A stretch of DNA of 64,000 bases from Podarcis tiliguerta (taxonomy: Eukaryota). The stretch is taken from NCBI GenBank assembly GCA_965153285.1, contig OZ229110.1; one strand, written 5' to 3'. The stretch's first letter is position 1. Each line of letters starts with the position of its first letter. Below are positions 26,101 to 29,100 of this stretch, piece by piece. Made by a program: the position numbers and the translations under genes. Below the pieces are notes generated by a model, which was not told where the DNA came from, made no database searches, and saw only the letters and a list, made by a program, of their open reading frames with translations.

Positions 26101-29100
26101 AAATAGGTACCACTCTGGTGGGAAGGTAAACGGCGTTTCCGTGTGCTGCTCTGGTTCGCCAGAAGCGGCTTAGTCATGCTGGCCACATGACCCGGAAGCT
26201 GTACGCCGGCTCTCTCAGCCAGTAAAGCGAGATGAGTGCTGCAACCCCAGAGTCGTCCGTGACTGCACCTAACGGTCAGGGGTCGCTTTACCTTTACATG
26301 CCGTGGAATATACATATTAATTGATGAAGGTTGGTGAGCCACAATTTCCTCTTGTGGAAATGAGATGTGAAGTGGCCCCAAGGATCCACAAATCTTCTGG
26401 CATTCTTTCTGATTCACACGTGTTTTTTTCTTCACGTGCTTAACTCCATTTGTGAAACGCAATCATAACACTCGTTTGCGGCATAGATTCTTCTGATGGG
26501 ATCCACTGTTCCACTCTGCTCAGCACAATGGGAGAGGATGTTTAATACATCCCGTATTCCTGGAGAGGAAACAGGTAAGCGGAATCAGCTGAAGAAAAGG
26601 AACATCAAAGAATTGAAATGCTTCCAGAATTTCTTCTTGAGTATACCATTCTAATAACAAACATTCGTATTTGCAGTGTGTGCAGCCCAAGGAGAATGGA
26701 GTGACTTGTACACTTGAAATATGTGGCAGCCGTTGATCAAATCCTGATCCACATTTCAAATACCTTGCTGGTTCACCTTGTATGATTATGTGCTGTCCCT
26801 GTTCTTTCTCTTTAAAAAAAATATAAATAAAGGTGCTCCCGGGAAATGATTTGCTACCCGGTATGGGTTCTTTGACTTTCCTTTTTTCCTTTCAGCTTAT
26901 GATTTACAATGCCATCCCAATGTGCTCTTCTCAGTATGAACGTTTGTTCAACACTTGCCGTTTACCAGGCACAGAGACAGGTACAGTGTTAGTCCTGTCA
27001 ATCCTGTCAATGTTTTTGCCTCCCCACTTTTGCATCCTAATCTTCTATGTATGTAGCAGATAACTTAAGCCTACAACATTTGCATATCTTGTGAGGCTGT
27101 GTGATTTTTCCATCAGAGAAATCACCATAATTTGCATTATAATATGCTAATAAGATCCAGTTCTTAAAAGTTATGAACCATTTCAGTGTTGTGCAAACGC
27201 ACTACTAAGTACATTGAGGCGTATTATAATGAATGATGAGAGTTGCTACAGGAATCTGTTCCCATTTGCTGTCACTTCCTAGAACTGTTTGTGTGTGTGT
27301 GTTCCTGAACAGGTGTTGAATCATTTAAATGTATTTTTTGGTTTGTATATCACATTTCTATGCCTCTTCTGTGTTGCCAAAACTAAATTCAAAGTGGTAT
27401 ACTGTACTTCATAAATCATGATAAAAATGATGATATAAAAATACTTCTTAAAAAGCAATAAAAACCTCACAAATGCACTTTTAAAAATCTGGTCCTAAAT
27501 ATATTAGCGTAATATCAAATCAAGAAACCTTCAGCTGTGACTAAAAAGCCCTCTTAAAGAGTCAAGTTTTAACCAGCCATCAAACAATGAGAGAAGTGGC
27601 TAGGTGAGCTTCTGATCAAAATACACCCCAGAGTGTAGGTACTACCACAGAGAAAGCTTTGGAGCTCTATGCTCCATTTTTGTGAAAGGTGGACTAACAC
27701 CTCTCCCCATAGATTTAAGAGGGCAGATTTTCATGAAGCCGATGAATACCTTTCACATGGCGTGTTAAAATTGGCTTGCAGGAACGGGGTGAAGGGTCAG
27801 TATTTGAAGTCACCCCAAACAGGGAATGCATTCTTAAAATATTTTTTCTAATGAACTTGTTTTCTACTGATAAAATTGTGTTGGTCAAGAACAAAATAGT
27901 TCTTGATGCTGAAAGATTGGTTCCATTTCCCCCCCAGTGCTGCACATGCTGGGTCACAATAAGCGAATAAGGATCACAAAACAAAGAAGAAAGAAGGATC
28001 AACAGATCAACAGCAGAGGATCAACAGCAGAGTAATTCTAATGGTTCTGAGAATATTTCACCATTAGAATTACTCTGCTTTTGTATTTGTTGATCGTTCT
28101 TTCTTCTTTGCTTTGCATGTGGTGAGATCTTTTAGCTGAGCCTCATTACAATGGGAAGAAAATAATGTGAGCATCTCCTCTTTGCCGCCCCGTTTATAGA
28201 CATGCATAGCAGGGCTCCCCTTTATTTTCTGGAAATATTATTTCAGATCTCGTCATCTGCACAGTTTATCTCAAATAGGGCAAAGGTAGGAGGTAGCCTG
28301 TCAAACCAGAGTAAGTAAAGTAGGTAAAGGTGTGTTAATTTTAATTTTCTAATGTTAATAAGAAACTGGATCTGCCTTATGACAAATGTAATGTCTTCTA
28401 ATGTGAAATAATTTAGTTGAGAAAAATGCAGCTTGTGCATAGAAACAGACTCAGATGGTTCATATACTTCCTTGAACTGGACCTTGCAAAAGTGCCATGA
28501 AACACTTCATAAAGCAGTTATTAATTCAACTGGTAATAAGCCCAACATTTTGCCCCGTTTTTAAATAATAGAATCACAGAAAATAAGCAATCTTTTTTCG
28601 AATATGCTCTCAGTTACCTAAAATCACTACTAATGTTCTTGGTAATATTTCTAATTTCATTACTCATTTATCTTAAAGCTTTGCTCAGCATGCTGTTCTT
28701 TTGGTAATGACAAATAGTGATCAAAATTTGACAATGAATTGCAAATTTCTGGCTTTATTTTGAATGTATTACTTCTACAAAAGCAGTGCTTTTTCTGTGT
28801 GATAGTTAGTTCTCCGGTTACTATACTGCATCCTGGTTGAAGGTTTGATATCTGCATCTCTTTTTTTTCCATAGCTTGAATTTTCTCGCATTTACATTCC
28901 TTGACTGTAAAAGAAACATAGGCTTGCATTCAGTGTACCACTAAGGAGATAGGTTTCATCCCCCTGTGGGAGGGAAATGCCATTGACGCTAGAACAGGGA
29001 GTTAGTTGAATACAGCCCATAGAATTATCTTAGAATATGTAGTTTTACCTCCTGTCATAGTTGGACATCCTATCATGCTCCGTATCAAGGTTTGTTAGAG

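Follow-up and report, generated by a model that had tools for sequence, protein, structure and literature searches.

In human ATE1, an element lying between exons 7a and 7b (R3) can pair with R1, at one acceptor, or with R4, at the other, so that one of the acceptors is hidden, a mechanism that was proven by compensatory mutants and an antisense oligonucleotide (PMC7797038). We analyzed a related arrangement in a 64,000-nucleotide (nt) stretch of DNA from the lizard Podarcis tiliguerta (contig OZ229110.1 of assembly GCA_965153285.1; the whole stretch is referred to as the window), where the CPT1A gene contains two tandem homologous exons, 9A and 9B, and where a purine-rich box (A) at the start of the intron between them is complementary both to the polypyrimidine tract and AG region of 9B (box B) and, less strongly, to a U-rich sequence 5' of 9A (box C). 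The A:B helix dominates the predicted structural ensemble, in which it buries the candidate 9B branch point, the tract, and the AG and touches the 9A donor. Our tentative reading, plausible but short of being probable, is that this helix masks the 9B acceptor as a cis repressor and makes 9A the default, in the manner of an ATE1-like module for masking a 3' splice site. The likeness to ATE1 covers the two tandem homologous mutually exclusive exons, the intronic element between them, complementary to stretches 5' of both exons although on the 9A side no more strongly than controls, the hiding of a 3' splice site by pairing, and the overlap of the pairing downstream of the intronic element with the polypyrimidine tract. 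The two systems nevertheless differ in several respects: the ATE1 selectors both lie on acceptors, are alike, are of similar stability, and show conservation throughout vertebrates (PMC7797038), whereas in the lizard splice signals are covered on the 9B side only, the two helices differ by ~15-20 kcal/mol, the helix is without conservation in one comparator (contig L002, described below), and the helix is a computational prediction.

Other described systems share single features with the lizard locus. In the docking-site/selector systems of insects (Dscam1 clusters, 14-3-3zeta, Mhc, and srp), a docking element likewise pairs with one selector at a time, but the pairing loops out the competitors of the selector-adjacent exon and thereby activates that exon, with a docking site that is external to the cluster (PMC6071210, PMC4691838). 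The main lizard pairing, in contrast, loops out intron only, and its predicted effect on the adjacent exon is repression. A local helix at one exon of an exclusive pair that represses this exon and sets the default is also found in chicken beta-tropomyosin, where a stem reportedly sequesters exon 6B of the 6A/6B pair, as is said to have been experimentally proven by Libri et al. in 1991, although the gene is another one and the helix has another architecture. Drosophila CPT1 (whd) belongs to the same enzyme family, and its exclusive catalytic-domain exons 6A/6B give rise to isoforms of different activity (PMC10879661); their choice is regulated via SR proteins and nutrition, with RNA structure not reported in that study.

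Exons 9A (26487..26574, 88 nt) and 9B (26896..26980, 85 nt), which like the other exons and the RNA elements of the locus given below lie on the + strand, are separated by an intron of 321 nt (26575-26895) with the 9A donor GT at 26575-76 and the 9B AG at 26894-95. An initial annotation of this DNA had singled out box A (26587-26612), which starts 12 nt into the intron after the 9A donor, box B (26868-26897), and the core of box C (26421-26434), and all three were found exactly as it had described them. It had also proposed A:B helices of 8+8+7 base pairs (bp); the pairing held, but the core computed as helices of 7+9+7 bp (-25.5 kcal/mol in RNAduplex), and the extended helix, formed by 26574-26614 and 26866-26913, reached ~38 bp and -36.7 kcal/mol. 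The 5' arm of the extended helix (26574..26614) comprises the G/GUA of the 9A donor together with the purine-rich A box, and the 3' arm (26866..26913) runs from the 9B branch region, with its candidate A at 26875, through the polypyrimidine tract and the AG to nucleotide 18 of exon 9B. The helix was present in the minimum free energy (MFE) and centroid structures of both the intron alone and the region 26380-27000, and pair probabilities of 0.85-1.0 were obtained for the extended helix in 800-nt and 2.4-kilobase contexts. It is an interrupted helix enclosing a loop of ~250 nt. Pairing covered the entire 9B 3' splice site, with branch A 26875, the tract, and the AG all paired at probabilities above 0.98. 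In silico support for the proposal that this fold conceals 9B is good, and the fold is stronger than the initial annotation had supposed. Furthermore, A and B were reciprocal best partners in the interval between exon 8 (24971..25078, 108 nt, ending in phase 0; placed by tblastn with CPT1 proteins and by splice signals) and exon 10 (29987..30182, 196 nt), and the last 30 nt before 9B had the lowest unpaired probability among the 17 acceptors of the gene (0.21 vs 0.30-0.60). An origin of the arms as members of a repeat family or as transposon ends was rejected because the A box is unique within the window, and an Rfam search returned no match. An additional inverted-repeat pair, 26656-26669 in the intron and 26935-26948 in the middle of exon 9B (14 nt, 86% complementary), lies outside the dominant fold.

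The strength of the A:B pairing was evaluated against several backgrounds. With the dinucleotide shuffles that the initial annotation had proposed as a control on duplex energy, 2 of 2000 sequences were as strong as the core boxes and none of 2000 was as strong as the extended arms (z = -5.0). As a same-gene control, the flanks of 18 donors were paired with the flanks of 17 acceptors in all combinations, and the value of -36.7 kcal/mol for the 9A donor and the 9B acceptor was compared with those of the 305 other flank pairs (mean -15.8, standard deviation 4.2, minimum -28.2 kcal/mol). A number of other results, however, weigh against a masking role for the helix. Random placements with the same geometry were as strong as A:B in 55 of 1721 cases, and an equally strong partner was located no more than ~300 nt upstream for 4 of 72 matched pyrimidine tracts in one control and for 5 of 71 in another, giving p values of about 0.03-0.07 for the look-elsewhere controls overall; the MFE of the whole intron was no better than that of shuffles (z = -0.67); and the arms are of low complexity, one purine-rich and the other pyrimidine-rich. 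The helix is a predicted one, and the folding programs disregard proteins and kinetics. At equilibrium, moreover, the predicted helix would fully silence 9B even though the 9B peptide is conserved, and for this reason a putative opening mechanism is required. A further consideration of this kind comes from the comparator contig discussed in the next paragraph. On our reading, the A:B pairing is unusual at the ~1-7% level, depending on the positional freedom allowed, and at this position it is unique within the gene.

Comparators were sought with a degenerate 9B-peptide pattern, which matched two metagenome contigs and yielded no matches in the genome contig set or in the viral contig set. The first of them, L002 (MDSQ01155498.1, 1661 nt), is probably from a fish, and not from human, because its peptides are unlike those of all tetrapods listed; it contains a 9A-like exon (9A', 290-377, 88 nt) and a 9B-like exon (9B', 888-972, 85 nt) separated by an intron of 510 nt. 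By inspection its site strengths are as in the lizard, with a weak acceptor and strong donor at 9A' and a strong acceptor and weak donor at 9B', and to judge from these sequences the site-strength logic looks older than the helix. The duplex between its donor and acceptor flanks, at -15.3 kcal/mol, lay at the null mean, and its 9B' acceptor was accessible (0.59). Conservation in species keeping both exons, which the initial annotation had set as a test, therefore failed in this sole, and distant, comparator. Because L002 has both exons without a comparable helix, the helix is apparently not ancestral to the exon pair, as far as this one distant comparator goes, and it may be specific to squamates or lacertids. 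Two candidate elements were rejected: an R3-like dual-complementary element at L002 429-458, which 5 of 40 shuffles matched, and a shared pairing of the region upstream of 9A with the first bases of 9B (lizard 26462-69, L002 205-213), which was among the best partners in neither sequence. The second contig, L001 (JAAUYL010102199.1, metagenome, 1-2929, GC 52%), encodes a CPT1 homologue whose open frames are long and interrupted in this region by few introns, if any; it is presumably from an invertebrate or a protist.

The same figures bear on the most serious rival explanation, chance complementarity, according to which a strong tract faces a purine-rich patch in a short intron without any selected role, and exclusion is brought about by site strengths and nonsense-mediated decay. 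The frequency of equally strong partners around matched tracts in the window and among random placements, the unremarkable folding energy of the whole intron, and the fact that L002 lacks a comparable helix despite having the same exon pair and site-strength pattern are all as this explanation would have it, as is the presence of early stops in both aberrant mRNAs (see below). It does not account as readily for the observation that none of the 305 other splice-flank pairs and none of the 2000 shuffles reached -36.7 kcal/mol, that the arms fall exactly on the two sites that are not to be joined, or that no other acceptor of the gene is as structured as that of 9B; in addition, so stable a helix would likely affect splicing, whether selected or not. 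We consider chance complementarity doubtful as the full explanation, but it has to be taken seriously.

What argues for a repressive role is mainly the distribution of splice-site strengths. The 9A acceptor has the poorest polypyrimidine tract of the gene (pyrimidine fraction 0.55, longest run 3) and the 9B acceptor the best (pyrimidine fraction 0.90, with an 18-nt pyrimidine run), while the 9A donor is the best consensus match of the gene (8/9) and the 9B donor is weaker (6/9). The gene thus has its two strongest sites, the donor of 9A and the acceptor of 9B, exactly where joining is to be avoided, and both lie within the helix; it is chiefly for this reason that a repressive clamp on the 9B acceptor, with 9A as the default, is favored. 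Because both exons have the same phase, one can be swapped for the other in frame, but inclusion of both leads to a TGA 14 codons into 9B and skipping of both leads to a TAA 6 codons into exon 10. As a consequence of these early stops, nonsense-mediated decay can back up mutual exclusion. Two other mechanisms of exclusion were ruled out: steric hindrance, because the distance from the 9A donor to the 9B branch point is 300 nt, compared with a ceiling of ~60 nt; and U2/U12 incompatibility, because all donors are of the GT-AG U2 type.

In the mechanism that we propose, the first 40 nt of the 9A-9B intron would pair with its last 30 nt and with the first 18 nt of 9B, and the resulting helix would repress the 9B acceptor in cis, keeping it apart from the 9A donor, to which its joining would produce a frameshifted mRNA. 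The 9A donor would then be spliced to exon 10, making 9A the default, and 9B would be used only if the helix were unformed or opened. Candidate causes are the binding of proteins at either the purine box or the pyrimidine tract, the action of helicases, or a kinetic trapping of A by C during transcription, and mRNAs containing both exons or neither would be removed by nonsense-mediated decay. If the helix does set the choice, this would add to ATE1 a second example in vertebrates of mutually exclusive exons governed by RNA structure, and one that could be manipulated with a single antisense oligonucleotide in a metabolically important gene.

Binding proteins could also act without any helix. 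The A box contains GAAGAAAAGGAA, and GAA-rich motifs bind SR/Tra2-type factors; box A might accordingly be an SR/Tra2-type intronic site and box B a strong U2AF/PTB tract, with the regulators that bind them setting the 9A:9B ratio. A precedent is provided by Drosophila CPT1, whose exons 6A/6B are under the control of the SR proteins 9G8, Tra2, and SF2 and of starvation (PMC10879661), and L002 likewise has a purine-rich run immediately 3' of its 9A' donor, where no strong pairing is formed. The sites are putative, however, and this explanation does not say why the complementarity should be exact in register and extend across the AG into exon 9B. We regard it as unlikely to be the whole account, and it is compatible with the helix model in that proteins could open the helix.

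The initial annotation had gone further than a clamp on 9B and had envisaged a two-state switch in which A:B hides 9B and A:C, by looping out 9A, hides 9A, conceivably with temperature sensing in an ectotherm. Box C in its full extent (26411..26434) forms an inverted repeat with A and is the weaker alternative partner of A, at -10.8 to -15.1 kcal/mol for the duplex, some 15-20 kcal/mol weaker than A:B. The A:C pairing exists and occupies A nucleotides 26590-26605, which are shared with A:B, so the two pairings are mutually exclusive, as a switch would require. In transcripts ending before B, A was paired with C at a probability of ~0.8 in two of three contexts and C was thus its dominant partner; in the third truncated context A was divided between C and an internal pyrimidine copy at 26801..26813, a direct repeat resembling the start of B, with which A pairs transiently when nascent transcripts are folded. 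These properties, together with the precedent of the ATE1 layout, speak for the switch. Against it, A:C was not distinguished from chance among control pairs (16 of 304 as strong), the dual complementarity of A to B and C was matched by 4 of 60 shuffles, and in the full transcript at equilibrium A:B had a probability of ~1 and A:C of ~0, the latter throughout the range of 10 to 42 C. In the full-length fold, a local CACGUG/CACGUG hairpin holds box C in its loop. Because A:C is ordinary and close to zero once B is present, all that is left of the switch as proposed is a brief state during transcription.

Nor does the second fold appear to hide 9A. The distance from box C to the 9A AG downstream is 53-76 nt, and the box is 5' of the candidate branch site CUUAAC (26438..26443, with the branch A at 26442, 44 nt 5' of the AG), which was read from the sequence and is separated from the 9A acceptor by an AG-free interval; box C is off the 9A branch site, tract, and AG alike and covers no 9A splice signal. 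The expected number of A:B pairs decreased from 25.7 at 10 C to 24.8 at 42 C, and the predicted helix does not melt in that range. Because the A:B pairs barely fall between these temperatures, a thermosensor is unsupported by the modeling. Taken with the unequal stabilities, these results make a balanced switch with temperature sensing a very improbable account of the locus. A related reading would be that an exon pair lost in mammals and birds is governed by a kinetic switch of the ATE1 kind, of which the helix forms one half and in which A would pair with C first and then be captured by B, with the speed of transcription, and through it body temperature or nutritional state, setting the ratio of the two isoforms. 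This is a speculative idea to which we give little weight; if it were true, ectotherm physiology would be linked to the control of fatty-acid oxidation through CPT1A isoforms that differ in the catalytic domain.

Whatever the role of the helix, 9A and 9B are tandem homologous exons of which one is used at a time, and the pair is real and ancient. CPT1A is the rate-limiting enzyme of long-chain fatty acid import into mitochondria, and non-mammalian vertebrates have two alternative versions of one of its catalytic-domain exons; should the helix be a matter of chance complementarity only, the exon pair itself would remain the more interesting object. In a profile search (alignment A4, which leaves out several short exon rows that MAFFT had misplaced in A1 and A3), pairs of CPT1A isoforms annotated as X1 (770 amino acids) and X2 (769 amino acids) were found in Podarcis raffonei, P. 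muralis, and Zootoca. Within each of these species the differences between X1 and X2 were confined to residues 294-320, which is exactly the 9A/9B swap, and the X2 peptide of these lizards was identical to that of 9B in the window. X1/X2 isoforms of the 9A/9B type are annotated in many squamates, turtles, and amphibians. Proteins of the 9B type among those listed came from snakes (Candoia, Vipera, Erythrolamprus, and Pseudonaja), other squamates (Elgaria, Rhineura, and Varanus), turtles (Pelusios, Pelodiscus, and Carettochelys), frogs (Discoglossus, Hyperolius, and Ascaphus), one caecilian, and the coelacanth, and the mammal and bird proteins listed were of the 9A type only. Exon 9A carries the QWER motif of mammalian CPT1A, and 9B retains the QYER motif of invertebrate CPT1, the ancestral type; because of this retention, 9A looks like a derived copy that was kept by mammals and birds. 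The crustacean X1/X2 proteins listed showed no difference within the 9A/9B segment, a full-length protein search with a CPT1B query returned CPT1B proteins only, a fragment search with the 78-amino-acid open reading frame around 9B gave no candidate within the length range that it covered, and a full-text literature search found no paper describing the vertebrate CPT1A exon pair. In a Pseudonaja textilis gene model (UniRef, P0360), 9A is followed by six residues, ETGTVL, which correspond in the window to the end of 9B plus read-through of the 9B donor. Although the model looks like an annotation artefact, it suggests a snake counterpart similar to the lizard's 9B donor region.

With respect to the gene as a whole, tblastn with CPT1 proteins placed CPT1A on the + strand of the window, with the ATG at 14015 and coding exons as far as ~43035. 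The translations of these exons were near-identical to CPT1A of Podarcis raffonei and P. muralis, and the match to Zootoca and Lacerta was slightly less close, as expected for a lacertid lizard nearest to Podarcis. A GC-rich stretch (GC 0.53) at 1800-2800, ~11 kilobases 5' of the ATG exon, is likely the CpG island of the CPT1A promoter together with a non-coding first exon. A TESMIN-like gene, recognized by open reading frames with CXC domains at ~61500-64000, lies 3' of CPT1A and is presumably a neighbor of human CPT1A as well. Within a CPT1A intron, at 36200-37200, there is a GC-rich tandem repeat with long open reading frames that repeat a P/A/G/R-rich motif, and this repeat has the strongest self-complementarity of the window (-50 to -71 kcal/mol).

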